A stretch of 64,000 nt of DNA from Macrostomum lignano. Taxonomy: Eukaryota. The stretch is taken from the NCBI GenBank assembly GCA_002269645.1, contig NIVC01000366.1, positions 248,001-312,000 on the forward strand, written 5' to 3'. The translations under genes and the position numbers were made by a program. A model generated the notes under the pieces. The model saw only the letters and a program-made list of their open reading frames with translations. It ran no database searches and was not told where the DNA came from. Shown here piece after piece: positions 19,441 to 64,000 of this stretch. Positions within the stretch are counted from its first letter, which is position 1. Every line of letters begins with the position of its first letter.

Positions 19441-19599
19441 ATCGAGGGTATTGTTGGGATTCTTGAGGTGTTAACACTTATTTTAATTGTCATATTTGAA
19501 TAACCTGTAGACATGGAGTCTGCAGACATCTGCGTGTCAGAGAGGCTTATAAGTGTAAGGGTTTGGGTAGAAATGTTGGTTTTTAATTGATTTTGAGGC

Positions 19600-19870
19600 T
19601 AATTTGGAATCTCGGCTTGGCTCTGCTTTTGCAATTAACGGCCTTGAGGGCCAACCCCCAAGGCACAGTAAGTGTACATGCCTAACGATACATATAGTTA
19701 GGGCCGCTGTACACTCCTGTGTGAGTGTGCGCCTGTGCGTATGACTGAGTACGCATCCGCGCGCTTGTGTGCCTGCTCAGGGGAGTCGGCGGAATGGGCA
19801 GCAATGCCTCTCACCGGTTTTGTGACAGTGGCGCCTAAAGTGCGCCAAGGTGCACACAACCCCAGCTTTA
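19600..19870 (+). repeat. Interspersed repeat (copies at 37555-37830 on - and, diverged, 41680-41830 on +)
   Basis: Shared CCTTGAGGGCCAACCCCCCAAGGCACAGT...GGCGGAATGGGCAGCAATGCCTCTC block. Class unknown; possibly a retroelement 3' end. Confidence 0.75.
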
Positions 19871-20605: not shown

Positions 20606-20796
20606 TTTTGATCAAAGCCCAGTTCTAAAAAAACTAGCGGAAATTCAATCCAGTCTAACCCCAGTCTAACCCCAGTTCAAAACATTCTAACGGAAGTAAG
20701 GTTTAGCCATAGACAAAATGATCCTCAGTCTGAATTGAATTTCCGCTAGTTTTTTTAGAACTGGGCTTTGATCAAAATTGAACGTGAAAAGGTGTA
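20606..20796. mobile_element. Palindromic MITE, left-truncated copy of the 37156-37389 element
   Basis: 44-bp inverted arms at 20606-20649 / ~20734-20776. Right terminus ATTGAACGTGAAAAGGTGTA is the same as in the second copy. Confidence 0.8.
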
Positions 20797-20980
20797 CTAC
20801 TACTACTACTACTGCATAGGTCTGATTAATACTCAATGAGAACCCCGCGTATTAGCTCAATATAATTAATACGACACAGTAAATATGAAGAAAAATTGTC
20901 TAAAGAAATTTTGACCATCGTATCTAAGCCAATAAAAAAGCTGTTTTATTTCGAAATGTTAATATTATAATCTACCGAAG

Positions 20981-21399: not shown

Positions 21400-21880
21400 T
21401 GTTCAGCTGCTGAGCAACCAGCCTCCCAGATCCTCAATTGCTAGGCCAGCCTCCCAGATCCTCAGTTGCTGGGCCAGCCTCCCAGATCCTCAGTTGCTGG
21501 GCCAGCCTCCCAGATCCTCAGTTGCTGGGCCAACCTCCCAGATCCTCAGTTTCTACCTAGCCAGCCTCCCAGATCCTCAGTTGCTGGGCCAGCCTCCCAG
21601 ATCCTCAGTTGCTGGGCCAGTCTTCCCGATCCTCAGTTGCTGGGCCAGCCTCCCAGATCCTCAGTTGCTGGGCCAGCCTCCCAGATCCTCAGTTGCTGAG
21701 CCAGCCTCCCAGATCCTCAGTTGCTGGGGCCAGCCTCCCAGATCCTCAGTTGCTAGGCCAGCCTCCCAGATCCTCAGTTGCTAGGCCAGCCTCCCAGATC
21801 CTCAGTTGCTGGGGCCAGCCTCCCAGATCCTCAGTTGCTAGGCCAGCCTCCCAGATCCTCAGTTGCTGGGGCCAGCCTCC
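21400..21880. repeat. 28-bp minisatellite GATCCTCAGTTGCTGGGCCAGCCTCCCA downstream of EXT1
   Basis: Tandem units of the same family as EXT1 intron 2. Confidence 0.9.
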
Positions 21881-22199
21881 ATTGACATTTGCAATTACAG
21901 CCGATAGCTCGTTACAAAATGCAATTTTGTCTTCCCAGCAAAATGCAATTTTATGTCTTCCCAGCAAAATGCAATTTTATGTCTTCCCAGCTGTTATCAG
22001 TATATATATATGCAATACATATATCACTATATGTATGATATATGTATTGTAATCAATGATACATGATATGCATTCAATTCTTGTTAGCTAAGCTATTCGA
22101 CTAGTCACCCTTGCTCTGCAATGAAGAAAAATACCACTTCGTGCTTTCAGAAAAATCGCCCTCAAACAGAAATTCGCAAGTGTCTTTGTAAATTGATTG

Positions 22200-23400
22200 A
22201 AATACAATTTTGTTCAGTCAGACCTCGATTCGCTCATTCGACTGTTTTATGACTTTCAACTGTTTTTTTTAAATACAACTCGATAGGTGCTTTGACGAAT
22301 ATTTGCATGCTTCACTGGATAAATTTATGTCATGCGAGTCTTTAATTTGTGTTTTCTTAGTCTAAAATACTACCTTAAAGACGCGGTCGTAACACAGTTT
22401 TTAGAAAATGGGGTGTAAAAAATGAACTGTGATTTCGTCAAAAAGGTCTGAGTCTCCAAGACGCCGTCATCAGGTTTCAGAAAGTTAAAGACCGAAACCG
22501 TATCTGCGTGAATTCTCGTCCAGTATTTTATCGGGCAGTACAGCGGCTGCGTGCTACCAGACCCTCTGTTCAGCCCTCGGTAACCAAGCCCCATCCATCT
22601 GTATGGGCTACGGCTAGTTCAGCCGCTTCCAGAGTCGAAAGTCGTTGCTTTCTTGCAGTGACACCTTGACGAAGATCAGCGAGTGTGACGAATCGACAGT
22701 TAAAGAATCTTGTCTGGGTTTTTCGGATTCAACCAGTCGTTAAGATCCTGTTCAGTGTCGCTCAGAAGCAGGCCGGCATGGAGTTCGCGCGTCTTATGCT
22801 TGACAATTTTGAAAGCGACGTCTCAAAATCAGTTGGATAATATTCTCAAAGGGGGTGAAAGCTGGGTCGTCATTGGGTCACCATAGACGGTGATGCGCCG
22901 CTGAAATTCTGCCGCGAGCGAACCGTTGAAAGGTGATGCGATGGCTGCCAACTTTTTCCCCGTCACTGCGGCATCTTGCGGCCAGTGTTGCTTGAGCACG
23001 GCGCCACAGTGAGTGCTGGATTGTACAGCACCGTCTTCTTGCCGCAGGTGCTGCAACCATTTGATCAAGAGCGGCCAAAGTCTGGGGGAGAAGGGCAGCT
23101 TCCTTCGCCCAAAAATATACTGAGGCACAGAGCAGGGGCGACCCAGCAATACAAGACAACGCAGCTGCCGCATCCGGCATATTCGCCCGGCCTCGCGCCT
23201 TGTGATTTCTTGCTCTTTCAAAAACTGAAGAACTTGATGGGGAGGCGATTCGACTTGAGATAGGAGCTCGGGAATGTCCTGCAAGCTGAGCTGGGCTCAA
23301 TCCAAAAATCTGATTTAAGGTTTTTCAACTCTTGGTTCAAGCGAATGCAACAAATGTTTGGATCTGGATGGAATTTCTGTTTAGAAATGCGATTAGCTCC
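22200..23400 (+). pseudogene. Decayed mariner transposase (copy 1)
   Basis: LDNILKGGESWV (degenerate TGDESW) and LPHPAYSPGLAPCDFLLFQKLK, with frameshifts and stops. TIRs not resolved. Confidence 0.8.
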
Positions 23401-24668
23401 TTTAATTGTAGATATACAAATTTAGCTGAATCCAACTATGTGAAGTACAATTTTATGAGAACTTCATAAGGGACACATATATGTAAATATATGTAAATTG
23501 AGTAGCTTGAATAAACATTGTAATTATACTTTTACCCAGACGCAATGAAAAAATATTTTGGCCATTATTCCACAGTTTTGATGTGTACCATAGACATTTG
23601 GATTGAAAAAATCCATCGCTCAGTATTTTTGTTAATAAATTCAGAACAACAAGAAGTAAATGAACAAAAAGGAAAAATCATTAAAACTAAAGTACCAGCT
23701 ACACGAAAAGAGTTAATAATAAATGTCACAGCTAGTGCAGTTTATCAGTTTGTAGTCGAAATTTGACAATGTAAAAATCAATTTGTCACCCAAAGTGAAA
23801 CATGCACAGTTCTCAAAGCCGCAGTTTCCAAAGATGCTCGACACTTTAGCCTGATGATTTGGCACTGCAAAAGGAGTTGGTCTATGTTGAATGTTTTCTA
23901 TGAAAGAGAAATACAGATGAGATAAATACAGAAGAATACAGAAATACTGATGAGATCCTCAGTTGCTGGGCCAGCCTCCCAGATCCTCAGTTGCTGGGCC
24001 AACCTCCCAGATCCTCAGTTTCTACCTAGCCAGCCTCCCAGATCCTCAGTTGCTGGGCCAGCCTCCCAGATCCTCAGTTGCTGGGCCAGTCTTCCCGATC
24101 CTCAGTTGCTGGGCCAGCCTCCCAGATCCTCAGTTGCTGGGCCAGCCTCCCAGATCCTCAGTTGCTGAGCCAGCCTCCCAGATCCTCAGTTGCTGGGGCC
24201 AGCCTCCCAGATCCTCAGTTGCTAGGCCAGCCTCCCAGATCCTCAGTTGCTAGGCCAGCCTCCCAGATCCTCAGTTGCTGGGGCCAGCCTCCCAGATCCT
24301 CAGTTGCTAGGCCAGCCTCCCAGATCCTCAGTTGCTGGGGCCAGCCTCCATTGACATTTGCAATTACAGCCGATAGCTCGTTACAAAATGCAATTTTGTC
24401 TTCCCAGCAAAATGCAATTTTATGTCTTCCCAGCAAAATGCAATTTTATGTCTTCCCAGCTGTTATCAGTATATATATATGCAATACATATATCACTATA
24501 TGTATGATATATGTATTGTAATCAATGATACATGATATGCATTCAATTCTTGTTAGCTAAGCTATTCGACTAGTCACCCTTGCTCTGCAATGAAGAAAAA
24601 TACCACTTCGTGCTTTCAGAAAAATCGCCCTCAAACAGAAATTCGCAAGTGTCTTTGTAAATTGATTG

Positions 24669-25869
24669 AAATACAATTTTGTTCAGTCAGACCTCGATTC
24701 GCTCATTCGACTGTTTTATGACTTTCAACTGTTTTTTTTAAATACAACTCGATAGGTGCTTTGACGAATATTTGCATGCTTCACTGGATAAATTTATGTC
24801 ATGCGAGTCTTTAATTTGTGTTTTCTTAGTCTAAAATACTACCTTAAAGACGCGGTCGTAACACAGTTTTTAGAAAATGGGGTGTAAAAAATGAACTGTG
24901 ATTTCGTCAAAAAGGTCTGAGTCTCCAAGACGCCGTCATCAGGTTTCAGAAAGTTAAAGACCGAAACCGTATCTGCGTGAATTCTCGTCCAGTATTTTAT
25001 CGGGCAGTACAGCGGCTGCGTGCTACCAGACCCTCTGTTCAGCCCTCGGTAACCAAGCCCCATCCATCTGTATGGGCTACGGCTAGTTCAGCCGCTTCCA
25101 GAGTCGAAAGTCGTTGCTTTCTTGCAGTGACACCTTGACGAAGATCAGCGAGTGTGACGAATCGACAGTTAAAGAATCTTGTCTGGGTTTTTCGGATTCA
25201 ACCAGTCGTTAAGATCCTGTTCAGTGTCGCTCAGAAGCAGGCCGGCATGGAGTTCGCGCGTCTTATGCTTGACAATTTTGAAAGCGACGTCTCAAAATCA
25301 GTTGGATAATATTCTCAAAGGGGGTGAAAGCTGGGTCGTCATTGGGTCACCATAGACGGTGATGCGCCGCTGAAATTCTGCCGCGAGCGAACCGTTGAAA
25401 GGTGATGCGATGGCTGCCAACTTTTTCCCCGTCACTGCGGCATCTTGCGGCCAGTGTTGCTTGAGCACGGCGCCACAGTGAGTGCTGGATTGTACAGCAC
25501 CGTCTTCTTGCCGCAGGTGCTGCAACCATTTGATCAAGAGCGGCCAAAGTCTGGGGGAGAAGGGCAGCTTCCTTCGCCCAAAAATATACTGAGGCACAGA
25601 GCAGGGGCGACCCAGCAATACAAGACAACGCAGCTGCCGCATCCGGCATATTCGCCCGGCCTCGCGCCTTGTGATTTCTTGCTCTTTCAAAAACTGAAGA
25701 ACTTGATGGGGAGGCGATTCGACTTGAGATAGGAGCTCGGGAATGTCCTGCAAGCTGAGCTGGGCTCAATCCAAAAATCTGATTTAAGGTTTTTCAACTC
25801 TTGGTTCAAGCGAATGCAACAAATGTTTGGATCTGGATGGAATTTCTGTTTAGAAATGCGATTAGCTCC
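24669..25869 (+). pseudogene. Decayed mariner transposase (copy 2, within the duplication)
   Basis: Same as 22200-23400 at offset 2469. Confidence 0.8.
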
Positions 25870-27148
25870 TTTAATTGTAGATATACAAATTTAGCTGAAT
25901 CCAACTATGTGAAGTACAATTTTATGAGAACTTCATAAGGGACACATATATGTAAATATATGTAAATTGAGTAGCTTGAATAAACATTGTAATTATACTT
26001 TTACCCAGACGCAATGAAAAAATATTTTGGCCATTATTCCACAGTTTTGATGTGTACCATAGACATTTGGATTGAAAAAATCCATCGCTCAGTATTTTTG
26101 TTAATAAATTCAGAACAACAAGAAGTAAATGAACAAAAAGGAAAAATCATTAAAACTAAAGTACCAGCTACACGAAAAGAGTTAATAATAAATGTCACAG
26201 CTAGTGCAGTTTATCAGTTTGTAGTCGAAATTTGACAATGTAAAAATCAATTTGTCACCCAAAGTGAAACATGCACAGTTCTCAAAGCCGCAGTTTCCAA
26301 AGATGCTCGACACTTTAGCCTGATGATTTGGCACTGCAAAAGGAGTTGGTCTATGTTGAATGTTTTCTATGAAAGAGAAATACAGGTGCTCAAGTATAGT
26401 TGCCGAACTTACCATTTGAAAGATGCACTACTTGGTTAAGTTGGCATGCGACTGATGAGCTTCGTCTGATGAGCTTCTTTGGTACCGCAGTATCCAAGCT
26501 GGGATTCTTTGGGACTGTCGGCTGCTCGACTGAATTGATTGGCCGCTTTCAGGCATCGTTTATAGCCGTCGAGGCGTTGAAGACTGCATGGTCGCGTTTT
26601 CTTCCTAGGTAGCGCCGCACGGTTCGTTCAGTCGTCGACAGGAAGATTTTTTCAATTAATAAGCGCGGCTGTTTGACGAGATGCACTATAGCCATAGTTG
26701 TTCGACAAGACAAATAGCTTTTTCTCCCACTACTCGCTTTCCTGATTTCTTGCAAGACGCAAGCAAAATCAGCACTCATCACAGTGTTGTCTATGGTCAA
26801 ACTAAGCCACACAACTCAGTCGTCTATGGGTAAAAGAACTCTTAAAACAGCCAATTGAAGCATGATAAAAAGTGTGGAATAATGGCCGCAAAAGTGTGGA
26901 ATAATGACTGCGCGCTGAGTGAAAGTATAGATACAATGCACTTGTATAGTATGCAACTTCGTTGAATAATGGACAAAACTCGAGTTTCTATGGCCACTAT
27001 TCAACGAAGTTGCATATATACAATCTACCATTGCTATCGAAACTCGAGTGGACTAATCTAGGTCCTATGGGACAGACGTTTCTACGTGTGCTTTTGTTTA
27101 TGGAACAACAAATAGGACATCTCTTGTTTAGCTAGACAATTTTTGGTA

Positions 27149-48931: not shown

Positions 48932-49006
48932 CAAATCGCATCCCTCATCTCTTTCCTCTTCATCTCGCAGTCCGTGATGCTGTAGCAGCCGCTTCAACAT
49001 GACAGC
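48932..49006 (-). CDS. TRPA-like channel, C-terminal exon AVMLKRLLQHHGLRDEEERDEGCDL
   Basis: CTACCAG acceptor and GTGAGT donor; 75 nt. Resembles the end of the TRPA coiled coil (..LIxQKMEI.E.D..DEG). Confidence 0.6.
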
Positions 49007-49144
49007 CTGGTAGTTACAAACTGACTCGATGTGGGACAGCCTGTTTTTGTAGTCAATTGGCGGTACATTTATTTAACCCGGATTTTTCGCACCTCTGCTA
49101 AACTATTAACTCAAAGAAAATTCTTTTCTATGCTTCAACATGCC

Positions 49145-49423
49145 TATGTTTAGCTCGCACATGCTCTGCTGATTCTGCAGCTCCGACAGGTAGCGCCGAT
49201 TCAGGCTCATCTCGGCCTGAAAGTTGGTCCGCTGAAACTCCTCTAACAGCTGCATGCGTTGAAGACGCCGCTCTGTGCTTTCCATGACTACCTGCTCAGC
49301 ATCGGTGGCCTGATGCTGCTGCTGTGACTCCGTCTGAGGTCCACCGCTACCTCGTGCGGACTTCTTGACAGAACGACCGATGCGACGGGCGAAGCATAGA
49401 ATACGGTTCCACAGGCTGGCCAT
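49145..49423 (-). CDS. TRPA-like channel, cytoplasmic C-terminal/coiled-coil exon (3' boundary uncertain)
   Basis: CTCTCCCCAG acceptor. MASLWNRIL...ERRLQRMQLLEEFQ..EMSLNRRYLSELQNQQ is coiled-coil-like. No clean phase-0 GT donor at its end. Confidence 0.55.
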
Positions 49424-49457
49424 CTGGGGAGAGGCAGTGAGAGAAGCATTGCGAAGG

Positions 49458-50187
49458 GGTAGCTCAGCGACCATTGGGGTAGCTCAGTGACCATTGGGGT
49501 AGCTCAGTGACCATTGGGGTAGCTCAGTGACCATTGGGGTAGCTCAGTGACCATTGGGGTAGCTCAGTGACCATTGGGGTAGCTCAGTGACCATTGGGGT
49601 AGCTCAGCGACCATTGGGGTATCTCAGTGACCATTGGGGTAGCTCAGTGACCATTGGGGTAGCTCAGTGACCATTTGGGTAGCTCAGTGACCATTGGGGT
49701 AGCTCAGTGACCATTGGGGTAGCTCAGTGACCATTGGGGTAGCTCAGTGACCATTGGGGTAGCTCAGTGACCATTGGGGTAGCTCAGTGACCATTGGGGT
49801 AGCTCAGTGACCATTGGGGTAGCTCAGCGACCATTGGGGTATCTCAGTGACCATTGGGGTAGCTCAGTGACCATTGGGGTAGCTCAGTGACCATTGGGGT
49901 AGCTCAGTGACCATTGGGGTAGCTCAGTGACCATTGGGATAGCTCAGTGACCATTGGGGTAGCTCAGTGACCATTGGGGTAGCTCAGTGACCATTGGGGT
50001 AGCTCAGTGACCATTGGGGTAGCTCAGTGACCATTGGGGTAGCTCAGTGACCATTGGGGTAGCTCAGTGACCATTGGGGTAGCTCAGTGACCATTGGGGT
50101 AGCTCAGTGACCATTGGGGTAGCTCAGTGACCATTGGGGTAGCTCAGTGACCATTGCGGTAGCTCAGTGACCATTGGGGTAGCTCAG
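49458..50187. repeat. 20-bp minisatellite GGGGTAGCTCAGTGACCATT
   Basis: Near-perfect tandem array, about 36 copies by length. Confidence 0.95.
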
Positions 50188-53100
50188 TCCAGTGTCTAGT
50201 CCAGTGTCTAGAGTCCAGTGTCTAGAGTCCAGTGTCTAGAGTCCAGTGTCTAGAGTCCAGTGTCTAGAGTCCAGTGTCTAGAGTCCAGTGTCTAGAGTCC
50301 AGTGTCTAGAGTCCAGTGTCTAGAGTCCAGTGTCTAGAGTCCAGTGTCTAGAGTCCAGTGTCTAGAGTCCAGTGTCTAGAGTCCAGTGTCTAGAGTCCAG
50401 TGTCTAGAGTCCAGTGTCTAGAGTCCAGTGTCTAGAGTCCAGTGTCTAGAGTCCAGTGTCTAGAGTCCAGTGTCTAGAGTCCAGTGTCTAGAGTCCAGTG
50501 TCTAGAGTCCAGTGTCTAGAGTCCAGTGTCTAGAGTCCAGTGTCTAGAGTCCAGTGTCTAGAGTCCAGTGTCTAGAGTCCAGTGTCTATAGAGTCCAGTG
50601 TCTAGAGTCCAGTGTCTAGAGTCCAGTGTCTATAAACTCCAGTGTCTAGAGTCCAGTGTCTAGAGTCCAGTGTCTATAGAGTCCAGTGTCTAGAGTCCAG
50701 TGTCTATAGAGTCCAGTGTCTAGAGTCCAGTGTCTAGAGTCCAGTGTCTAGAGTCCAGTGTCTAGAGTCCAGTGTCTAGAGTCCAGTGTCTAGAGTCCAG
50801 TGTCTAGAGTCCAGTGTCTAGAGTCCAGTGTCTAGAGTCCAGTGTCTAGAGTCCAGTGTCTAGAGTCCAGTGTCTAGAGTCCAGTGTCTAGAGTCCAGTG
50901 TCTAGAGTCCAGTGTCTAGAGTCCAGTGTCTAAAGTCCAGTGTCTAGAGTCCAGTGTCTAGAGTCCAGTGTCTAGAGTCCAGTGTCTAGAGTCCAGTGTC
51001 TAGAGTCCAGTGTCTAGAGTCCAGTGTCTAGAGTCCAGTGTCTAGAGTCCAGTGTCTAGAGTCCAGTGTCTAGAGTCCAGTGTCTAGAGTCCAGTGTCTA
51101 GAGTCCAGTGTCTAGAGTCCAGTGTCTAGAGTCCAGTGTCTAGAGTCCAGTGTCTAGAGTCCAGTGTCTAGAGTCCAGTGTCTAGAGTCCAGTGTCTAGA
51201 GTCCAGTGTCTAGAGTCCAGTGTCTAGAGTCCAGTGTCTAGAGTCCAGTGTCTAGAGTCCAGTGTCTAGAGTCCAGTGTCTAGAGTCCAGTGTCTAGAGT
51301 CCAGTGTCTAGAGTCCAGTGTCTAGAGTCCAGTGTCTAGAGTCCAGTGTCTAGAGTCCAGTGTCTAGAGTCCAGTGTCTAGAGTCCAGTGTCTAGAGTCC
51401 AGTGTCTAGAGTCCAGTGTCTAGAGTCCAGTGTCTAGAGTCCAGTGTCTAGAGTCCAGTGTCTAGAGTCCAGTGTCTAGAGTCCAGTGTCTAGAGTCCAG
51501 TGTCTAGAGTCCAGTGTCTAGAGTCCAGTGTCTAGAGTCCAGTGTCTAGAGTCCAGTGTCTAGAGTCCAGTGTCTAGAGTCCAGTGTCTAGAGTCCAGTG
51601 TCTAGAGTCCAGTGTCTAGAGTCCAGTGTCTAGAGTCCAGTGTCTAGAGTCCAGTGTCTAGAGTCCAGTGTCTAGAGTCCAGTGTCTAGAGTCCAGTGTC
51701 TAGAGTCCAGTGTCTAGAGTCCAGTGTCTAGAGTCCAGTGTCTAGAGTCCAGTGTCTAGAGTCCAGTGTCTAGAGTCCAGTGTCTAGAGTCCAGTGTCTA
51801 GAGTCCAGTGTCTAGAGTCCAGTGTCTAGAGTCCAGTGTCTAGAGTCCAGTGTCTAGAGTCCAGTGTCTAGAGTCCAGTGTCTAGAGTCCAGTGTCTAGA
51901 GTCCAGTGTCTAGAGTCCAGTGTCTAGAGTCCAGTGTCTAGAGTCCAGTGTCTAGAGTCCAGTGTCTAGAGTCCAGTGTCTAGAGTCCAGTGTCTAGAGT
52001 CCAGTGTCTAGAGTCCAGTGTCTAGAGTCCAGTGTCTAGAGTCCAGTGTCTAAAGTCCAGTGTCTAGAGTCCAGTGTCTAGAGTCCAGTGTCTAGAGTCC
52101 AGTGTCTAGAGTCCAGTGTCTAGAGTCCAGTGTCTAGAGTCCAGTGTCTAGAGTCCAGTGTCTAGAGTCCAGTGTCTAGAGTCCAGTGTCTAGAGTCCAG
52201 TGTCTAGAGTCCAGTGTCTAGAGTCCAGTGTCTAGAGTCCAGTGTCTAGAGTCCAGTGTCTAGAGTCCAGTGTCTAGAGTCCAGTGTCTAGAGTCCAGTG
52301 TCTAGAGTCCAGTGTCTAGAGTCCAGTGTCTAAAGTCCAGTGTCTAGAGTCCAGTGTCTAGAGTCCAGTGTCTAGAGTCCAGTGTCTAAAGTCCAGTGTC
52401 TAGAGTCCAGTGTCTAGAGTCCAGTGTCTAGAGTCCAGTGTCTAGAGTCCAGTGTCTAGAGTCCAGTGTCTAGAGTCCAGTGTCTAGAGTCCAGTGTCTA
52501 GAGTCCAGTGTCTAGAGTCCAGTGTCTAGAGTCCAGTGTCTAGAGTCCAGTGTCTAGAGTCCAGTGTCTAGAGTCCAGTGTCTAGAGTCCAGTGTCTAGA
52601 GTCCAGTGTCTAGAGTCCAGTGTCTAGAGTCCAGTGTCTAGAGTCCAGTGTCTAGAGTCCAGTGTCTAGAGTCCAGTGTCTAGAGTCCAGTGTCTAGAGT
52701 CCAGTGTCTAGAGTCCAGTGTCTAGAGTCCAGTGTCTAGAGTCCAGTGTCTAGAGTCCAGTGTCTAGAGTCCAGTGTCTAGAGTCCAGTGTCTAGAGTCC
52801 AGTGTCTAGAGTCCAGTGTCTAGAGTCCAGTGTCTAGAGTCCAGTGTCTAAAGTCCAGTGTCTAGAGTCCAGTGTCTAGAGTCCAGTGTCTAGAGTCCAG
52901 TGTCTAGAGTCCAGTGTCTAGAGTCCAGTGTCTAGAGTCCAGTGTCTAGAGTCCAGTGTCTAGAGTCCAGTGTCTAAAGTCCAGTGTCTAGAGTCCAGTG
53001 TCTAGAGTCCAGTGTCTAGAGTCCAGTGTCTAGAGTCCAGTGTCTAGAGTCCAGTGTCTAGAGTCCAGTGTCTAGAGTCCAGTGTCTAGAGTCCAGTGTC

Positions 53101-53336
53101 TAGAGTCCAGTGTCTAGAGTCCAGTGTCTAGAGTCCAGTGTCTAGAGTCCAGTGTCTAGAGTCCAGTGTCTAGAGTCCAGTGTCTAGAGTCCAGTGTCTA
53201 GAGTCCAGTGTCTAGAGTCCAGTGTCTAGAGTCCAGTGTCTAGAGTCCAGTGTCTAGAGTCCAGTGTCTAGAGTCCAGTGTCTAGAGTCCAGTGTCTAGG
53301 GTCCAGTGTCTAGTGTCCAGTGTCTAGAGTCCAGTA
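50188..53336. repeat. 14-bp minisatellite GAGTCCAGTGTCTA, about 3.1 kb
   Basis: Highly homogeneous array that directly abuts the 20-bp array. Confidence 0.95.
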
Positions 53337-53386
53337 TTCACTGTCACAGATTCCAGCACCTTGAACCCCATTGTCCGCAGCCTCAC

Positions 53387-53773
53387 CAGCAGGTTCACTA
53401 GCAGAATGGGCATCAGAGTGATAAACACAGCCAGCATAGACAGTGTAACCACCGGATGATGTAGCGTCCGCTTATCTTCGTCAAATATCTTAGATACAAA
53501 CGTGCTCAAGTAGTCGTACTCGCCAAGCATCATGAGGGCGGTCTTCAGGAATGCTAGACTCGGTCTGCTCCAAGCGTCCAAGGCTGTGTCTTGGTGCAGC
53601 GCTTCACTCTCGCTGTAGTAAGCTGAGTAGCTTGCAGCAGCTCGAGACCTGGCTTTGGCGAACAGTGAGTCAGCTGTGAGCTGCGAGCGATCAACTTCAT
53701 CGCTACTGAAATTGCCACCGCTCAGAGTGACGTTGCCGACTTGCTGCTCAAAGAGGCTTTGCTCAGTTGATGT
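53387..53773 (-). CDS. TRPA-like channel exon: extracellular loop, pore helix, filter, S6
   Basis: AWSRPSLAFLKTALMMLGEYDY..HPVVTLSMLAVFITLMPILLVNLL aligns with TRPA1 PFSSP..TFSMMLGDINY..HP..FVPIVLMNLL. CGTAG acceptor and GTGAGG donor; 387 nt, no stops. Confidence 0.85.
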
Positions 53774-54060: not shown

Positions 54061-54223
54061 AGTTAAACTGACGTCTTTCAACGCAGGCATGGGCTCATAC
54101 TGCAGCAGCATGTGAAAGGACAGTCCAAATCCAATCACCAGAATGGAGAACAGCATTAGCACCCTGATGAGGGTCTGCAGAATCTCCGTGAACATGATTA
54201 CGTATAGGCCGAACATTTCGTAG
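54061..54223 (-). CDS. TRPA-like channel exon: S4-S5 linker and S5
   Basis: (R)YEMFGLYVIMFTEILQTLIRVLMLFSILVIGFGLSFHMLL matches TRPA1 FENCGIFIVMLEVILKTLLRSTVVFIFLLLAFGLSFYILL. CCTTAG acceptor and GTGAGT donor. Confidence 0.9.
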
Positions 54224-54409: not shown

Positions 54410-56295
54410 AGATGACCCTCTGTAAAATGACCTGTAGGATGACCTTCTGTAGGATGACCTTCGGTAGGATGATCTTCCCTTCTGTAGGATTACCTTCTGT
54501 AGGATGACCTTCGGTAGGATGACCCTCTGTAAGATGACCTTCGGTAGGATGACCTTCTGTAGGATGACCTTCGGTAGGATGACCCTCTGTAAGATGACCT
54601 TCGGTAGGATGACCTTCTGTAGGATAACCTTCTGTAGGATAACCTTCTGTAGGATGACCTTCTGTAGGATGACCTTCTTAAGGATGACCTTCTGTAGGAT
54701 GACCTTCTGTAGGATGACCTTCTGTAGGATGACCTTCTGTAGGATGACCTTCTGTTGGATGACCTTCTATAGGATACCCTCTGTAGGATACCCTCTGTAG
54801 GATACCCTCTGTAGGAGTACCTTCTGTAGGAGTACCTTCTGTAGAATGATCTACTGTAGGATGACCTGTAGGATGACCTTCTGTAGGATGACCTTCTGTA
54901 GGATGACCTTCTGTAGGATGACCTTCTTAAGGATGACCTTCTGTAGGATGACCTTCTGTAGGATGACCTTCTGTAGGATGACCTTCTGTAGGATGACCTT
55001 CTGTTGGATGACCTTCTATAGGATACCCTCTGTAGGATACCCTCTGTAGGATACCCTCTGTAGGAGTACCTTCTGTAGGAGTACCTTCTGTAGAATGATC
55101 TACTGTAGGATGACCTTCTGTAGGATGACCTTCTGTAGGATGACCTTCTGTAGGATGACCTTCTGTAGGATGACCTTCTGTAGGATGACCTTGAGTAGGA
55201 TGACCTTCCCTTCTGTAGGATGACCTTCTGTAAGATGACCTTCTGTAGGATGACCTTCTGTAGGATGTCCTTCTGTAGGATGACCTTCTGTAGGAAGACC
55301 TTCTGTAGGATGACCTTCTGTAGGATGACCTTCTGTAGGATGACCTTCTGTAGGATGACCTTCTGTAGGATGACCTTCTGTAGGATGACCTTCTGTAGGA
55401 TGACCTTCTGTAGGATGACCTTCTGTAGGATGACCTTCTGTAGGATGACCTTCTGTAGGATGACCTTGAGTAGGATGACCTTCCCTTCTGTAGGATGACC
55501 TTCTGTAGGATGACCTTCTGTAGGATGACCTTCTGTAGGATGACCTTCTGTAGGATGACCTTCTGTAGGATGACCTTCTGTAGGATGACCTTCTGTAGGA
55601 TGACCTTCTGTAGGATGACCTTCTGTAGGATGACCTTCTGTAGGATGACCTTCTGTAGGAAGACCTTCTGTAGGATGACCTTCTGTAGGATGACCTTCTG
55701 TAGGAAGACCTTCTGTAGGATGTCCTTCTGTAGGATGACCTTCTGTAGGATGACCTTCTGTAGGATGACCTTCTGTAGGATGACCTTCTGTAGGATGACC
55801 TTCTGTAGGATGATCTTCTGTAGGATGACCTTCTGTAGGATGACCTTCTGTAGGATGTCCTTCTGTAGGATGTCCTTCTGTAGGATGACCTTCTGTAGGA
55901 TGACCTTCTGTTGGATGACCTTCTATAGGATACCCTCTGTTGGATGACCTTCTATAGGATACCCTCTGTAGGATGACCTTCTGTAGGATACCCTCTGTAG
56001 GATGACCTTCTGTAGGAGTACCTTCTGTAGAATGATCTACTGTAGGATGACCTTCTGTAGGATGACCTTCTGTAGGATGACCTTCTGTAGGATGACCTTC
56101 TGTAGGATGACCTTGAGTAGGATGACCTTCCCTTCTGTAGGATGACCTTCTGTAAGATGACCTTCTGTAGGATGACCTTCTGTAAGATGACCTTCTGTAG
56201 GATGACCTTCTGTAGGATGACCTTCTATAGGATACCCTCTGTAGGATACCCTCTGTAGGATTACCTTCTGTAGGATTACCTTCTGTAGGAAGACT
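54410..56295. repeat. 15-bp minisatellite GATGACCTTCTGTAG (array A)
   Basis: Tandem array. A period divisible by 3 explains the EGHPT and RMTFC pseudo-ORFs. Confidence 0.95.
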
Positions 56296-56392
56296 TTTAC
56301 TCAAAAATAGTTTTCTAGAAACTTTAAAGGTAACGTGGGAATGCGAGAAGGATCTTTTTAGGGAGCCTCGCGCTTTGAGGACATGGGCTTAC

Positions 56393-56562
56393 CGTTGAAA
56401 GAATAGAAGGAAGTTAAACCAGGCGAGGAACACTGCAACAGATCCAGTAGCCTGTTGGTAATGCTGGCCTTCTCCTGTCAGGTGCGATAGAGCGTAGACT
56501 AAGGTTACGCAATAGAGAGCATTTTCCAAATAGTTCACTGCATCGGTCAGGTAACGTAGGCG
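56393..56562 (-). CDS. TRPA-like channel exon S3-S4 (copy A)
   Basis: RLRYLTDAVNYLENALY...GSVAVFLAWFNFLLFFQR matches TRPA1 YFLDISNVLEWIIY...GAIAVYFYWMNFLLYLQR. TTTCAG acceptor and GTAAGC donor; 170 nt, phase 0-2. Confidence 0.9.
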
Positions 56563-56704
56563 CTGAAATGCATATCAGGTGTTTCTTGTGGCTAACAGGG
56601 AGGAGGGGGTGATTCTGCCTTTGTCTATTTATGATTCAATCTAATAAATGGTGATTCCAGGTAGTGGGTGGTGATTTTAATCAGCAGGCGATGATTTTAG
56701 CTAA

Positions 56705-59700
56705 AAAGTGATGATTCTAATCAACAGGTGATGATTCTAATCAACAGGTAATGATTTTAATCAACAGGTAATGATTCTAAATAACAGGTAATGATTCTTA
56801 TCAACAGGTGATGATTCTTATCAACAGGTAATGATTTTAATCAACAGGTAATGATTCTTATCAACAGGTGATGATTCTAATCAACAGGTAATGATTTTAA
56901 TCAACAGGTGATGATTCTAAATAACAGGTAATGATTTTAATCAACAGGTGATGATTCTTATCAACAGGTAATGATTTTAATCAACAGGTAATGATTCTAA
57001 TAAACTGGTAATGATTTTAATCAACAGGTAATGATTTTAATCAACAGGTGATGATTCTAATAAACTGGTAATGATTTTAATCAACAGGTAATGATTCTAA
57101 TCAACAGGTAATGATTCTAATAAACTGGTAATGATTTTAATCAACAGGTAATGATTTTAATCAACAGGTAATGATTCTAATAAACTGGTAATGATTTTAA
57201 TCAACAGGTAATGATTTTAATCAACAGGTAATGATTCTTATCAACAGGTAATGATTTTAATCAACAGGTGATGATTCTAATAAACTGGTAATGATTTTAA
57301 TAAACTGGTAATGATTCTAATAAACTGGTAATGATTCTAATAAACTGGTAATGATTTTAATCAACAGGTAATGATTTTAATCAACAGGTAATGATTTTAA
57401 TCAACAGGTAATGATTCTAATAAACTGGTAATGATTCTTATCAACAGGTAGTGATTCTAATAAACTGGTAATGATTCTAATAAACTGGTAATGATTCTAA
57501 TAAACTGGTAATGATTCTATTAAACTGGTAATGATTCTAATAAACTGGTAATGATTCTTATCAACAGGTAGTGATTCTAATAAACTGGTAATGATTCTAA
57601 TAAACTGGTAATGATTCTAATCAACAGGTAATGATTCTAATAAACTGGTAATGATTTTAATCAACAGGTAATGATTTTAATCAACAGGTAATGATTCTAA
57701 TAAACTGGTAATGATTTTAATCAACAGGTAATGATTCTTATCAACAGGTAATGATTTTAATCAACAGGTGATGATTCTAATAAACTGGTAATGATTCTAA
57801 TAAACTGGTAATGATTCTAATAAACTGGTAATGATTCTAATAAACTGGTAATGATTTTAATCAACAGGTAATGATTTTAATCAACAGGTAATGATTTTAA
57901 TAAACTGGTAATGATTCTAATAAACTGGTAATGATTCTAATAAACTGGTAATGATTCTAATAAACTGGTAATGATTCTAATAAACTGGTAATGATTCTAA
58001 TAAACTGGTAATGATTTTAATCAACAGGTAATGATTTTAATCAACAGGTAATGATTCTAATAAACTGGTAATGATTTTAATCAACAGGTAATGATTTTAA
58101 TCAACAGGTAATGATTTTAATCAACAGGTAATGATTCTAATAAACTGGTAATGATTTTAATCAACAGGTAATGATTTTAATCAACAGGTAATGATTTTAA
58201 TCAACAGGTAATGATTCTAATAAACTGGTAATAATTCTTATCAACAGGTAGTGATTCTAATAAACTGGAAATGATTCTAATAAAGTGGTAATGATTCTAA
58301 TAAACTGGTAATGATTCTAATAAACTGGTAATGATTCTAATAAACTGGTAATGATTCTTATCAACAGGTAGTGATTCTAATAAACTGGTAATGATTCTAA
58401 TAAACTGGTAATGATTCTAATAAACTGGTAATGATTCTAATAAACAGGTAATGATTCTAATAAACTGGTAATGATTCTAATAAACTGGTAATGATTCTTA
58501 TCAACAGAAAGTGATTCTAATAAACTGGTAATGATTCTAATAAACTGGTAATGATTCTAATAAACTGGTAATGATTCTAATAAACTGGTAATGATTCTAA
58601 TAAACTGGTAATGATTCTAATAAACTGGTAATGATTCTAATAAACTGGTAATGATTTTAATCAACAGGTAATGATTCTAATAAACTGGTAATGATTTTAA
58701 TCAACAGGTAATGATTCTAATAAACTGGTAATGATTTTAATCAACAGGTAATGATTTTAATCAACAGGTAATGATTTTAATCAACAGGTAATGATTCTAA
58801 TAAACTGGTAATGATTTTAATCAACAGGTAATGATTTTAATCAACAGGTAATGATTTTAATCAACAGGTAATGATTCTAATAAACTGGTAATGATTCTTA
58901 TCAACAGGTAGTGATTCTAATAAACTGGTAATGATTCTAATAAACTGGTAATGATTCTAATAAACTGGTAATGATTCTAATAAACTGGTAATGATTCTAA
59001 TAAACTGGTAATGATTCTAATAAACTGGTAATGATTCTAAGAAACTGGTAATGATTCTAATAAACTGGTAATGATTCTAATAAACTGGTAATGATTCTAA
59101 TAAACTGGTAATGATTCTAAGAAACTGGTAATGATTCTAATAAACTGGTAATGATTCTAATAAACTGGTAATGATTCTAATAAACTGGTAATGATTCTTA
59201 TCAACAGGTAGTGATTCTAATAAACTGGTAATGATTCTAATAAACTGGTAATGATTCTAATAAACTGGTAATGATTCTAATAAACTGGTAATGATTCTAA
59301 TAAACTGGTAATGATTCTAATAAACTGGTAATGATTCTAATAAACTGGTAATGATTCTAATAAACTGGTAATGATTCTAATAAACTGGTAATGATTCTAA
59401 TAACCTGGTAATGATTCTAATAAACTGGTAATGATTATAAGAAACTGGTAATGATTCTAATAAACTGGTAATGATTCTAATAAACTGGTAATGATTCTAA
59501 TAAACTGGTAATGATTCTTATCAACAGGTAGTGATTCTAATAAACTGGAAATGATTCTAATAAACTGGTAATGATTCTAATAAACTGGTAATGATTCTTA
59601 TCAACAGGTAGTGATTCTAATAAACTGGTAATGATTCTAATAAACTGGTAATGATTCTAATAAACTGGTAATGATTCTAATAAACTGGTAATGATTCTAA

Positions 59701-61345
59701 TAAACTGGTAATGATTCTAATAAACTGGTAATGATTCTAAGAAACTGGTAATGATTCTAATAAACTGGTAATGATTCTAATAAACTGGTAATGATTCTAA
59801 TAAACTGGTAATGATTCTAAGAAACTGGTAATGATTCTAATAAACTGGTAATGATTTTAATCAACAGGTAATGATTTTAATCAACAGGTAATGATTCTAA
59901 TAAACTGGTAATGATTTTAATCAACAGGTAATGATTCTTATCAACAGGTAATGATTTTAATCAACAGGTGATGATTCTAATAAACTGGTAATGATTCTAA
60001 TAAACTGGTAATGATTCTAATAAACTGGTAATGATTCTAATAAACTGGTAATGATTTTAATCAACAGGTAATGATTTTAATCAACAGGTAATGATTTTAA
60101 TCAACAGGTAATGATTCTAATAAACTGGTAATGATTCTTATCAACAGGTAGTGATTCTAATAAACTGGTAATGATTCTAATAAACTGGTAATGATTCTAA
60201 TAAACTGGTAATGATTCTAATAAACTGGTAATGATTCTAATAAACTGGTAATGATTCTTATCAACAGGTAGTGATTCTAATAAACTGGTAATGATTCTAA
60301 TAAACTGGTAATGATTCTAATAAACTGGTAATGATTCTAATAAACTGGTAATGATTCTAAGAAACTGGTAATGATTCTAATAAACTGGTAATGATTCTAA
60401 TAAACTGGTAATGATTCTAATAAACTGGTAATGATTCTTATCAACAGGTAGTGATTCTAATAAACTGGTAATGATTCTAATAAACTGGTAATGATTCTAA
60501 TAAACTGGTAATGATTCTAATAAACTGGTAATGATTCTAATAAACTGGTAATGATTCTAATAAACTGGTAATGATTTTAATCAACAGGTAATGATTTTAA
60601 TCAACAGGTAATGATTCTAATAAACTGGTAATGATTTTAATCAACAGGTAATGATTTTAATCAACAGGTAATGATTTTAATCAACAGGTAATGATTCTAA
60701 TAAACTGGTAATGATTTTAATCAACAGGTAATGATTTTAATCAACAGGTAATGATTTTAATCAACAGGTAATGATTCTAATAAACTGGTAATGATTCTTA
60801 TCAACAGGTAGTGATTCTAATAAACTGGTAATGATTCTAATAAACTGGTAATGATTCTAATAAACTGGTAATGATTCTAATAAACTGGTAATGATTCTAA
60901 TAAACTGGTAATGATTCTTATCAACAGGTAGTGATTCTAATAAACTGGTAATGATTCTAATAAACTGGTAATGATTCTAATAAACTGGTAATGATTCTAA
61001 TAAACTGGTAATGATTCTAAGAAACTGGTAATGATTCTAATAAACTGGTAATGATTCTTATCAACAGGTAGTGATACTAACCAACAGGTGATGATTCTAA
61101 TCAACAGCTGATAAGATTCTAATCAACAGGTGATAATTCTAATCAGCAGGTGATGATTCTAATTAGCAGGTGATGATTCTAATCAGCAGGTGATGATTCA
61201 AATTAGCAGGTGATAATTCTAATCAGCAGGTGATGATTCTAATCAGCAGGTGATAATTCAAATCAGCTGGTTATGATTCTACCCAACAGGGGGTGATTCA
61301 AATTAACAGGTGATGACTCTAATCAACAGGTGATAATTCTAGATA
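56705..61345. repeat. 20-bp two-variant minisatellite GTAATGATTTTAATCAACAG / GTAATGATTCTAATAAACTG (array A, about 4.6 kb)
   Basis: Tandem array with interspersed unit variants. Confidence 0.95.
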
Positions 61346-61395
61346 TCTAGCGGAGATAAAACATTCCTCAAAGACGCTGACCCAGTAACACATAC

Positions 61396-61488
61396 CTGAT
61401 GGTACAGCTGCATCAGCTCCTTGATCCAGTTGACAATGCAAAATACAACGATGAAAATTGGTGGAACTAGACGCTCCCAGGTTGGCTC
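61396..61488 (-). CDS. TRPA-like channel exon S2
   Basis: EPTWERLVPPIFIVVFCIVNWIKELMQLYHQ carries the KE..Q motif. TTTGTAG acceptor and GTATGT donor; 93 nt. Confidence 0.85.
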
Positions 61489-61569
61489 CTACAAAAGCAT
61501 CAATAAAGCGTGTTGAAAAATCTAATTGATCGTTTCTTTGAGCACGATAATTCTAAAATTCAAACTCAC

Positions 61570-61708
61570 CACGGCCATTGAGCACTGGTTCTTAGCCGGC
61601 ACATCAGTATGCTGAGGCTGTTTGCGGATGGCCAGCCAGGAGAGCATGGCTAAGAACACGGTGTAAACCAACAGGCTGAAGTTGTGAATCCAGCAGCCAT
61701 ACTGACGC
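61570..61708 (-). CDS. TRPA-like channel exon pre-S1/S1
   Basis: (W)RQYGCWIHNFSLLVYTVFLAMLSWLAI resembles TRPA1 KWLAYGFRAHMMNLGSYCLGL. CTTACAG acceptor and GTGAGT donor; 139 nt, phase 2-0. Confidence 0.85.
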
Positions 61709-61827
61709 CTGTAAGACCGTAAATCGATTGTAGCCGAACAATAAATGGTGTAGAATGGTGTGAAATCTGTCTAAACACTACTATGTAGCAAGAGAGAATA
61801 TTTTTATAATGGAATTTCTCAAGCAAG

Positions 61828-62430
61828 GCCTTCTGTAGGAAGACCATCTATAGGAAGACCTTCTGTAGGATGACCTTCTGTAGGATGACCTTCTGTAGGA
61901 TGACCTTCTGTAGGATGACCTTCTGTAGGATGACCTTCTGTAGGATGACCTTCTGTAGGATGACCTTCTGTAGGATGACCTTCTGTAGGATGACCTTCTG
62001 TAGGATGACCTTCTGTAGGATGACCTTCTGTTGGATGACCTTCTATAGGATACCCTCTGTTGGATGACCTTCTATAGGATACCCTCTGTAGGATGACCTT
62101 CTGTAGGATACCCTCTGTAGGATGACCTTCTGTAGGAGTACCTTCTGTAGAATGATCTACTGTAGGATGACCTTCTGTAGGATGACCTTCTGTAGGATGA
62201 CCTTCTGTAGGATGACCTTCTGTAGGATGACCTTGAGTAGGATGACCTTCCCTTCTGTAGGATGACCTTCTGTAAGATGACCTTCTGTAGGATGACCTTC
62301 TGTAAGATGACCTTCTGTAGGATGACCTTCTGTAGGATGACCTTCTATAGGATACCCTCTGTAGGATGACCTTCTATAGGATACCCTCTGTAGGATGACC
62401 TTCTGTAGGATTACCTTCTGTAGGAAGACT
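61828..62430. repeat. 15-bp minisatellite GATGACCTTCTGTAG (array B), with GAAGACC variants at its left edge
   Basis: The right part reproduces the variant pattern of 55890-56295. Confidence 0.95.
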
Positions 62431-62527
62431 TTTACTCAAAAATAGTTTTCTAGAAACTTTAAAGGTAACGTGGGAATGCGAGAAGGATCTTTTTAGGGAG
62501 CCTCGCGCTTTGAGGACATGGGCTTAC

Positions 62528-62697
62528 CGTTGAAAGAATAGAAGGAAGTTAAACCAGGCGAGGAACACTGCAACAGATCCAGTAGCCTGTTGGTAATGCT
62601 GGCCTTCTCCTGTCAGGTGCGATAGAGCGTAGACTAAGGTTACGCAATAGAGAGCATTTTCCAAATAGTTCACTGCATCGGTCAGGTAACGTAGGCG
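62528..62697 (-). CDS. TRPA-like channel exon S3-S4 (copy B, duplicate)
   Basis: Appears identical by eye to 56393-56562, with the same splice sites and flanks, at offset 6135. Confidence 0.8.
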
Positions 62698-62834
62698 CTG
62701 AAATGCATATCAGGTGTTTCTTGTGGCTAACAGGGAGGAGGGGGTGATTCTGCCTTTGTCTATTTATGATTCAATCTAATAAATGGTGATTCCAGGTAGT
62801 GGGTGGTGATTTTAATCAGCAGGCGATGATTTTA

Positions 62835-64000
62835 GCTAAAAAGTGATGATTCTAATCAACAGGTGATGATTCTAATCAACAGGTAATGATTTTAATCAAC
62901 AGGTAATGATTCTAAATAACAGGTAATGATTCTTATCAACAGGTGATGATTCTTATCAACAGGTAATGATTTTAATCAACAGGTAATGATTCTTATCAAC
63001 AGGTGATGATTCTAATCAACAGGTAATGATTTTAATCAACAGGTGATGATTCTAAATAACAGGTAATGATTTTAATCAACAGGTGATGATTCTTATCAAC
63101 AGGTAATGATTTTAATCAACAGGTAATGATTCTAATAAACTGGTAATGATTTTAATCAACAGGTAATGATTTTAATCAACAGGTGATGATTCTAATAAAC
63201 TGGTAATGATTTTAATCAACAGGTAATGATTCTAATCAACAGGTAATGATTCTAATAAACTGGTAATGATTTTAATCAACAGGTAATGATTTTAATCAAC
63301 AGGTAATGATTCTAATAAACTGGTAATGATTTTAATCAACAGGTAATGATTTTAATCAACAGGTAATGATTCTTATCAACAGGTAATGATTTTAATCAAC
63401 AGGTGATGATTCTAATAAACTGGTAATGATTTTAATAAACTGGTAATGATTCTAATAAACTGGTAATGATTCTAATAAACTGGTAATGATTTTAATCAAC
63501 AGGTAATGATTTTAATCAACAGGTAATGATTTTAATCAACAGGTAATGATTCTAATAAACTGGTAATGATTCTTATCAACAGGTAGTGATTCTAATAAAC
63601 TGGTAATGATTCTAATAAACTGGTAATGATTCTAATAAACTGGTAATGATTCTATTAAACTGGTAATGATTCTAATAAACTGGTAATGATTCTTATCAAC
63701 AGGTAGTGATTCTAATAAACTGGTAATGATTCTAATAAACTGGTAATGATTCTAATCAACAGGTAATGATTCTAATAAACTGGTAATGATTTTAATCAAC
63801 AGGTAATGATTTTAATCAACAGGTAATGATTCTAATAAACTGGTAATGATTTTAATCAACAGGTAATGATTCTTATCAACAGGTAATGATTTTAATCAAC
63901 AGGTGATGATTCTAATAAACTGGTAATGATTCTAATAAACTGGTAATGATTCTAATAAACTGGTAATGATTCTAATAAACTGGTAATGATTTTAATCAAC
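62835..64000. repeat. 20-bp two-variant minisatellite (array B), runs off the window
   Basis: The unit-variant order follows that of array A from ~56700. Confidence 0.95.

Follow-up and report, generated by a model that had tools for sequence, protein, structure and literature searches.

A near-perfect 6.1-kb repeat sets a second S3-S4 exon ahead of S1 in a TRPA1-like gene of Macrostomum lignano

In the window analysed here, 64,000 nucleotides of Macrostomum lignano DNA (contig NIVC01000366.1, positions 248,001 to 312,000), a TRPA1-like gene on the minus strand carries a near-perfect 6.1-kb repeat that sets a second S3-S4 exon ahead of S1. We favor, by a modest degree of belief, the reading that part of a decaying TRPA paralogue was duplicated in tandem within the gene very recently, in an event that may be polymorphic. 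Rather than a new kind of channel, the most likely reading is a structural variant that is very young, or possibly an assembly error, in a gene copy already without an essential exon.

By its sequence, the gene is a TRPA channel of the TRPA1-like kind, as a first-pass annotation of this DNA had recognized. Among solved structures, the S1-S6 core matched Drosophila TRPA1 best (7ykr, E = 1.1e-36, full-length alignment), followed by human TRPA1 (6v9v/3j9p, about 2e-23), whereas the next subfamily, TRPV5, reached just 4e-4. The six-TM core also matched Pfam Ion_trans (4.8e-7), and the closest named relatives are all TRPA1 or TRPA1-like, with identities to TRPA1-like proteins of 42–50%. The pore helix and selectivity-filter motif (MMLG[DE]) are present, with LKTALMMLGEYDY aligning with MMLGELDF and MMLGEFDY, and the C-terminal exons align (MAFFT) with the coiled-coil/DEG region of P0124 and P0123, while stand-alone searches with these exons gave no significant match. 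The S1-S6 core is common to this gene and to TRPA1 channels from Drosophila, human, echinoderms, molluscs, arthropods and M. lignano itself (A0A1I8JFS6), as are AWFNFLLFFQR in S4, MMLGE.DY in the pore and MPILL.NLL in S6, and probably also a C-terminal coiled coil with ...DEG; the M. lignano paralogue A0A1I8JFS6 likewise has a long S5-pore loop. Unlike these channels, the present gene has an extra S3-S4 exon upstream of S1 and is without about 57 residues (IGLAVGDI...LKRLAMQVE...YPN). The window covers the 3' two-thirds of the gene, and the ankyrin-repeat N-terminus and pre-S1 linker would fall past base 64000. A neighboring innexin matches an M. lignano protein at 98% identity, in keeping with an origin of the window from this or a sibling species.

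The introns of the gene are filled with minisatellites. Read along the minus strand, the visible part begins with copy B of a 20-bp minisatellite (62807–64000), which is cut by the window end and is base for base the same as 56672–57865, followed by S3-S4 exon copy B (62528–62697; 170 nt, phase 0 in and phase 2 out) and by copy B of a 15-bp minisatellite (61829–62429; 601 bp), which holds the duplication junction. The intron preceding S1 closes with a unique 3' stretch (61709–61828), which has no counterpart downstream of the 15-bp array copy A and leads to the S1 exon (61570–61708; 139 nt, entered in phase 2) and the S2 exon (61396–61488; 93 nt). Beyond these lie 20-bp minisatellite copy A (56711–61341; 4.6 kb, 231 units with higher-order internal repeats), S3-S4 exon copy A (56393–56562; 170 nt) and 15-bp minisatellite copy A (54432–56294; 1.86 kb, with higher-order structure). 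The S5 exon (54061–54223; 163 nt) ends in ...LQYEPMPALKDVSLT, matching the M. lignano paralogue, and the exon for the pore loop, pore helix and S6 (53387–53773; 387 nt) ends in ...MPILLVNLL before the donor gtgagg. The next intron (49424–53386), expected to hold the exon or exons for the lower S6 gate and TRP-like helix, contains satellites only, and it precedes two C-terminal exons (overall 48932–49423), at 49423–49161 (MASLWNRIL...) and 49040–48932 (coiled-coil ...DEGCDL), probably separated by a small intron. AG acceptors and GT donors flank S3-S4 copy B, S1, S2, S3-S4 copy A and S5.

The two S3-S4 exons are identical in sequence and spaced 6135 bp apart; all that the first-pass annotation states at the sequence level was reproduced. 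At this offset, 56263–57865 and 62398–64000 are 100% identical across 1603 bp, a lower bound since the window end cuts the match. This exact match takes in about 1.2 kb of 20-bp minisatellite rich in unit variants, and since the longest exact repeat within the arrays themselves is at most 374 bp, the identity lies far above chance or array background. Five differences separate the copies, all of them in the 15-bp array: near 56250/62385 there is a C/A substitution together with a slippage-type indel of 15 nt, and three unit variants lie near 55815–55875. Homology ends at about 55700–55730 and 61816–61865, which places the duplication junction at about 61816–61865; one breakpoint indeed falls in the 15-bp minisatellite, the GATGACC array named in the earlier annotation. 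Array B repeats the first ~24 units of array A, continues in a run of consensus units and ends, past the homology limit, with three increasingly degenerate units (GGTCTTCCTATAGAT, GGTCTTCCTACAGAA and GGCCTTGCTTGAGAA), after which 120 bp of unique intron lead to S1. The copies have the same orientation, a single period of 6135 (6120 after the one-unit indel) and one junction.

That the assembly itself produced this repeat is unlikely, at perhaps one chance in a few, and nevertheless has to be weighed seriously. In that case, the true gene would have one S1-S4 block, and a false join of related 15-bp arrays from two introns would have led the assembler either to traverse a loop twice or to place two haplotype or homeologue versions in tandem. 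At least 1603 bp at 100% identity, including about 1.2 kb of fast-evolving minisatellite, is also what a mis-assembly would give, and the few differences could reflect alleles or paralogues. The M. lignano genome is notoriously hard to assemble, with 15% tandem repeats, heavy recent redundancy (180–312 Mb of redundant sequence), a polymorphic karyotype with extra chromosomes in the sequenced line, and a reference built with Canu from noisy PacBio CLR reads (PMC5730564). Assemblies commonly contain false duplications, which often represent haplotypes; on the same scaffold, their hallmark is a gap that separates the copies (PMC9516828). In its near-identical neighboring copies within a repeat-rich and redundant genome, the present locus resembles the heterotype and homotype false duplications of Ko et al. 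(2022); however, it is gapless, and its junction array is short and spannable by reads. The window contains no N, and arrays of 3–4.6 kb are gapless, implying a long-read assembly. The 601-bp array B lies between unique sequence of 377 bp on one side and 487 bp on the other, so that a single long read would span it, whereas arrays could be falsely joined only through an overlap of at most a few hundred bases within a 15-bp repeat. Moreover, the five differences have the appearance of genuine variation rather than of one set of reads assembled twice. The caution about mis-assembly voiced in the first-pass annotation remains valid, although the spannable junction, the missing gap and these differences take away some of its force.

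A nearby event also argues against an artefact. In the same window, 30 kb away, a second tandem duplication (2.47 kb) repeats 21484–23916 as 23953–26385, with 2433 bp at 100% identity, one breakpoint within a 28-bp satellite and, between the copies, a junction filler of 36 nt (23917–23952). An assembler would not be expected to invent such filler, and young satellite-associated rearrangements therefore look real in this region, where the occurrence of this same 28/31-bp satellite family at three sites in the window indicates that related arrays at nearby positions are normal. It is also conceivable, though improbable, that part of the 20-bp array, S3-S4 and the start of the 15-bp array were copied upstream of S1 in a non-tandem manner, without S1' and S2'. 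S3-S4 and its flanks are the only part of the block seen twice within the window, which does not require a second S1 and S2; in such a gene, S3-S4 copy B (phase 0 in) would follow the pre-S1 exon (phase 2 out) and shift the frame, making it a poison exon or one that is skipped. However, the identity is undecayed to the window edge, the head-to-tail layout with one period is exactly that of a simple tandem unit, and an insertion needs two junctions where a tandem event needs one.

With regard to the coding sequence, the exon order, phases and arithmetic proposed earlier were right on re-derivation: S1, S2 and S3-S4 sum to 402 nt (139 + 93 + 170), and an S4-to-S1 splice would therefore be in frame. 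If spliced, the junction would be TTCTTTCAACG joined to GCGTCAGTATGGC, reading ...FFQR/RQYGCW, and the frame is open through the remaining gene. The frame is kept because the duplicated block starts and ends in the same codon phase; this is a by-product, with a chance of roughly 1 in 3, and no evidence of function.

The gene also appears to be damaged downstream of the repeat. The S6 exon ends at NLL before its gt donor, the next homologous exon begins with MASLW, and the lower S6 gate and TRP-like helix (NLLIGLAVGDI...LKRLAMQVE) were not found anywhere in the window by permissive tblastn, whereas the IGLAVGDI...LKRLAMQVE segment is present in every relative compared. Where the exon is expected, a 14-bp satellite (50186–53335) abuts an unrelated 20-bp satellite (49456–50188) with ACT/CACTG microhomology. 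The missing segment presumably holds the equivalents of I957 and V961 of human TRPA1, which are reportedly lower-gate residues. The sequence past the S6 donor (VRLRTMGFKVLESV...) was considered as a degenerate IGLAVGDI exon and was rejected, as its similarity is not significant and a stop occurs in the first satellite unit. A junction from S6 to the C-terminal exon that skips the TRP helix would read CTAGTGAACCTGCTG joined to ATGGCCAGCCTGTGG. The absence of this exon may itself be a lesion of one allele or of the assembly. The exons that are visible are all intact, and their splice sites are canonical; any pseudogene would therefore be very young.

Searches for a product of the gene point the same way. 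No corresponding protein was found in 5.8 billion sequences, though M. lignano proteomes were included. When its own protein model or transcript was sought with the S1-S6 core, the search recovered just two proteins, one a fragment of 46% identity and the other a weaker match from Logan; the C-terminal exons as queries for a protein or transcript gave no matches, and the best match in an exhaustive HMMER search was the M. lignano paralogue, 50% identical. An exact-pattern scan with the S1 exon gave 0 matches in metagenome contigs; bacterial and viral collections have no bearing on a flatworm. Adjacent duplicated S1-S4 or S2-S4 modules were present in none of 160 relatives. Two proteins with two modules each, one from Hydra (2370 aa) and P0175 (1905 aa), were set aside as whole-channel fusions rather than adjacent S1-S4 duplications.

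These results bear on the suggestion, made in the first-pass annotation, of a channel with about 10 TM segments or of mutually exclusive S1-S4 cassettes. We regard it as very unlikely that a complete, expressed duplication provides a functional innovation, be it a 10-TM TRPA subunit in which one S1-S4 bundle follows another, or regulated alternation of the blocks. The preserved frame, intact exons and canonical splice sites would permit it, and four extra TM helices would probably keep the membrane topology. Insect TrpA1 offers a precedent for phase-compatible duplicated exons inside a TRPA1 gene, with mutually exclusive exon1a/1b and exon10a/10b, the latter between the ankyrin repeats and the TM segments (PMC11471635). 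However, the insect exons are single, diverged, functionally distinct and outside the TM core (PMC11471635), whereas here a three-exon TM block is presumably repeated as a whole, and its visible S3-S4 copies are identical, so that alternation would change nothing and there is no cassette diversity. Zero divergence likewise leaves no time for selection. The S4'-to-S1 join (..FFQRRQYG..) would be nearly loopless, with S1 cut off from the pre-S1 segment, and the absence of the lower gate and TRP-like helix from this gene copy, of a matching protein or transcript in the searches described and of adjacent S1-S4 modules in relatives makes a working product unlikely. A functional double-S1-S4 subunit with 10 TM, maybe from an allele or homeologue that keeps the TRP-helix exon, is exceedingly improbable.

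Taken together, the repeat and its identity, the exon phases, the TRPA assignment and the missing exon are shown by the sequence, whereas it is by inference that we take the repeat to be physically real and part of a complete tandem unit, propose how it arose and regard the gene as non-functional. Under the favored reading of a recent duplication in a decaying paralogue, a 6.1-kb unit comprising S1, S2, the 20-bp array, S3-S4 and the start of the 15-bp array would have been copied in tandem, with one breakpoint in the 15-bp array of the S4-S5 intron and the other at the margin of a small group of related 15-bp units in the intron preceding S1. Related arrays may have exchanged unequally, or replication may have switched templates at a stalled fork. 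The degenerate units that end array B are as expected for the edge of a native, related array upstream of S1, making satellite-mediated exchange plausible, in line with the unequal recombination between related satellites proposed in the earlier annotation. The same gene copy would have lost the lower S6 gate and TRP-like helix exon or exons via the junction of two unrelated satellites, and skipping one of the two identical blocks could still yield a normal mRNA. Intragenic exon-block duplications of the NAHR and FoSTeS-MMBIR types are similarly head-to-tail, in one orientation, with near-zero divergence and breakpoints in repeats, and the filler DNA of the 2.47-kb sister event is also of this type. 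By contrast, the repeats here are intronic minisatellites rather than interspersed elements, and the full second unit and reciprocal breakpoint lie outside the view of the window. The locus is therefore most readily viewed as a TRPA paralogue that has recently been disabled or is redundant, within a region rich in satellites and prone to rearrangement, and the duplication may be polymorphic within the sequenced line.

The weight of this locus for channel biology is small until expression is shown, and it serves as a warning for annotation, since counts and architectures of TRP channels, and of other genes, in satellite-rich flatworm assemblies need read-level checks before a new architecture is claimed. 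If the repeat is physically real, it would provide a snapshot of intronic minisatellites reshaping a gene, in which one channel gene has both gained an in-frame four-helix membrane module and lost an essential exon, with a third young rearrangement 30 kb off. It would then show how domain-level duplications in membrane proteins may originate, and would mark Macrostomum as a genome in which such events are frequent.

The S1–S6 translation of the TRPA gene, a minus-strand, TRPA1-like channel gene with minisatellite-filled introns, matches Pfam Ion_trans, and among solved structures it matches TRPA1 (7ykr at 1.1e-36; human TRPA1 at ~2e-23), with the next subfamily, TRPV5, at only 4e-4. An exhaustive HMMER search returned 1593 relatives; the closest with a name are TRPA1 or TRPA1-like proteins of various phyla (<=42% identity), and a M. 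lignano paralogue, A0A1I8JFS6 (479 aa), is 50% identical. No counterpart protein of this gene was found in a 5.8-billion-sequence collection that includes M. lignano proteomes. GenBank annotation of Mlig_3_7 left out transcripts overlapping repeats (PMC5730564), which may be one reason. The S5-pore loop at 53773–53560 (residues ~160–250 of P0124, the M. lignano paralogue) is unusually long (~100 aa) and N-x-S/T-rich; it is found in this gene and the paralogue alone, is lacking in the TRPA1-like proteins of other phyla, and looks like a lineage-specific insertion. The locus works like a TRPA1-type gene and mostly is one, but as assembled it fails a defining feature of TRPA1, the gate and TRP-like helix.

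After S6, all relatives read NLL-IGLAVGDI(E/A)xVQ...LKRLAMQVE...LP...YPN, which forms the lower gate and TRP-like helix, followed by a segment spelled GMASLWSKM in another relative (P0123) and a coiled-coil ending ...DEG. Here the S6 exon stops with ...MPILLVNLL/gtgagg at 53387, and the next homologous exon opens ag/ATGGCCAGC... (MASLWNRIL) at 49423. The missing ~57 residues (IGLAVGDI...LKRLAMQVE...YPN) were not found in the 64 kb by standard or very permissive tblastn. In the 3.96-kb intron (49424–53386, minus), a 14-bp satellite (50186–53335) directly adjoins an unrelated 20-bp satellite (49456–50188), with only ACT/CACTG microhomology at the junction (~50186–50190). A splice across this gap keeps the frame, and its product would be without the TRP-like helix and the equivalents of the human I957/V961 gate residues (reportedly so numbered in the TRPA1 structure paper of 2015). 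The gene copy, as assembled, is unlikely to yield a working channel. Since the remaining exons are all intact, the loss of the gate/TRP-helix exon must be recent, allelic or assembly-specific.

Along the minus strand of the 55.9–64.0 kb region, a 20-bp minisatellite is followed by S3/4 exon B (62697–62528), a 15-bp minisatellite (array B, 62429–61829), 120 bp of unique intron, S1 (61708–61570), S2 (61488–61396), 20-bp minisatellite A (61341–56711), S3/4 exon A (56562–56393), a further 15-bp minisatellite (array A, 56294–54432) and S5. The exon order given in the first-pass annotation, S3/4(B)-S1-S2-S3/4(A)-S5, is thereby upheld, with an AG acceptor and a GT donor at every exon. Its two S3/4 copies were also recovered: the two exons are identical in sequence, and at an offset of 6135 the copies agree at 100% over 1603 bp, reaching the window edge, while the longest exact repeat within the arrays themselves is 374 bp. 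The S1, S2 and S3/4 exons sum to 402 nt (134 residues), and the reading frame stays open whether the block is spliced in once or twice, as had been proposed. The breakpoint indeed falls in the 15-bp array, where homology stops at ~61816–61865 and array B passes through three ever more degenerate units into unique intron. Array B comprises ~24 first units of array A, a run of consensus units and the three degenerate 'GGTCTTCC/GGCCTTGC' units, which are missing from array A at the corresponding position. Within the 15-bp array, five differences separate the copies: a single substitution, a slippage-type indel of 15 nt and three unit variants.

A second tandem duplication lies 30 kb from the TRPA repeat (21484–23916 = 23953–26385; 2433 bp, 100.0% identity, period 2469). 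One of its breakpoints is within a 28-bp satellite, and its junction (23917–23952) carries a 36-nt filler (ATGAGATAAATACAGAAGAATACAGAAATACTGATG), as is classical for repair or template switching; ORFs within 21484–26385 (e.g., 25793–25350) have no Pfam match. Minisatellites make up about one quarter of the window, with units of 14, 15, 20, 21, 28 and 35 bp, several having higher-order internal repeats. Because one 28/31-bp family (CCAGCCTCCCAGATCCTCAGTTGCTGGG) occurs at three sites (15312–15659, 21418–21880 and 23953–24349), it is normal here for neighbouring sites to carry related arrays.

Next to the TRPA gene, a two-exon innexin gene (46492–46160 and 39143–38073, minus) shares 98% identity with the M. 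lignano innexin A0A1I8I560 and so assigns the window to M. lignano or a sibling species; a homeologue, another line or a sister species may account for the remaining 2%. A Helitron-like transposon fragment (~36500–33360, minus) contains Helitron_like_N at 2.4e-45 in ORF 34805–34104, with more long ORFs around it. Inverted dispersed repeats of ~200–280 bp and 80–87% identity (19592–19863 vs. 37836–37562; 20606–20799 vs. 37367–37156) are probably copies of an interspersed element.

The TRPA duplication is probably physically real. A mis-assembly is unlikely to have produced the repeat, although ~1.2 kb of minisatellite is perfectly identical between the copies, and M. lignano assemblies are known to be difficult and redundant: the genome was assembled with Canu from CLR reads, has 15% tandem repeats and 180–312 Mb of duplicated sequence, and line DV1 carries extra chromosomes (PMC5730564). 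However, array B is just 601 bp, flanked by unique blocks of 377 and 487 bp, so that the path from S3/4(B) through the array to S1 is short enough for ordinary long reads to span. The gapless window with its 3–4.6-kb arrays points to a long-read origin. A false join would require a very short overlap within the 15-bp repeat. Clean substitutions and a slippage event of unit size separate the copies, which are therefore distinct sequences rather than one read set used twice. Moreover, same-scaffold false duplications are typically separated by a gap (PMC9516828), whereas none lies between the copies (0 N in the window), and the independent duplication nearby carries junction filler, a sign that assemblers do not invent. 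A partial, non-tandem copy of the segment is improbable.

At the protein level, the block is in phase 2 at entry and exit, and its inclusion adds exactly 134 residues (S1–S4), hence four TM helices with membrane topology kept. Frame keeping is no evidence of selection, as chance alone would give it in ~1-in-3 cases, and skipping either block would restore a normal mRNA. The S4'-to-S1 join (..LLFFQR-RQYGCW..) would leave almost no cytoplasmic loop and part S1 from its pre-S1 segment. Adjacent S2–S4 modules occur in 0/160 close relatives, in agreement with the earlier statement that no such TRPA is known, and the double-module architecture would thus be unprecedented; the only two two-module proteins among these relatives are whole-channel fusions with modules 944 and 1290 residues apart. 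The ~10-TM product of the first-pass annotation would retain its frame and four extra helices, but a functional double-S1–S4 channel is highly improbable, given the lack of precedent, the zero divergence of the copies, the missing TRP-helix exon and the absence of a matching database protein. This argues for a transient structural variant, not an evolved design. Mutually exclusive cassettes, the other product envisaged, would give the same protein either way because the visible exon copies are identical. Insect TrpA1 differs here, as its mutually exclusive exons (exon1a/b and exon10a/b) lie outside the TM core and are diverged and functionally distinct (PMC11471635).

As to origin, unequal exchange might have joined the S4–S5 intron array to the edge of a short, related array already resident in the intron upstream of S1; alternatively, replication might have stalled in the 15-bp array, the fork then switching template to microhomology upstream of S1. 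The structure of array B fits both equally well, so that the recombination proposed earlier is compatible with the array ends without being singled out by them, and the earlier account holds as an observation and in part as an interpretation. On balance, we lean towards a 6.1-kb tandem duplication that is very young and may be polymorphic, in a Macrostomum TRPA paralogue that is redundant or was recently disabled; it would be one among several rearrangements associated with satellites in this region. Three events make up this picture, all of them very young and with a minisatellite breakpoint: the TRPA repeat, the 2.47-kb duplication and the satellite–satellite deletion. In kind, the TRPA duplication is a repeat-associated intragenic tandem duplication, a class already known. 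The locus is not yet a discovery in channel biology, but it serves as a neat illustration and as a warning for annotation.
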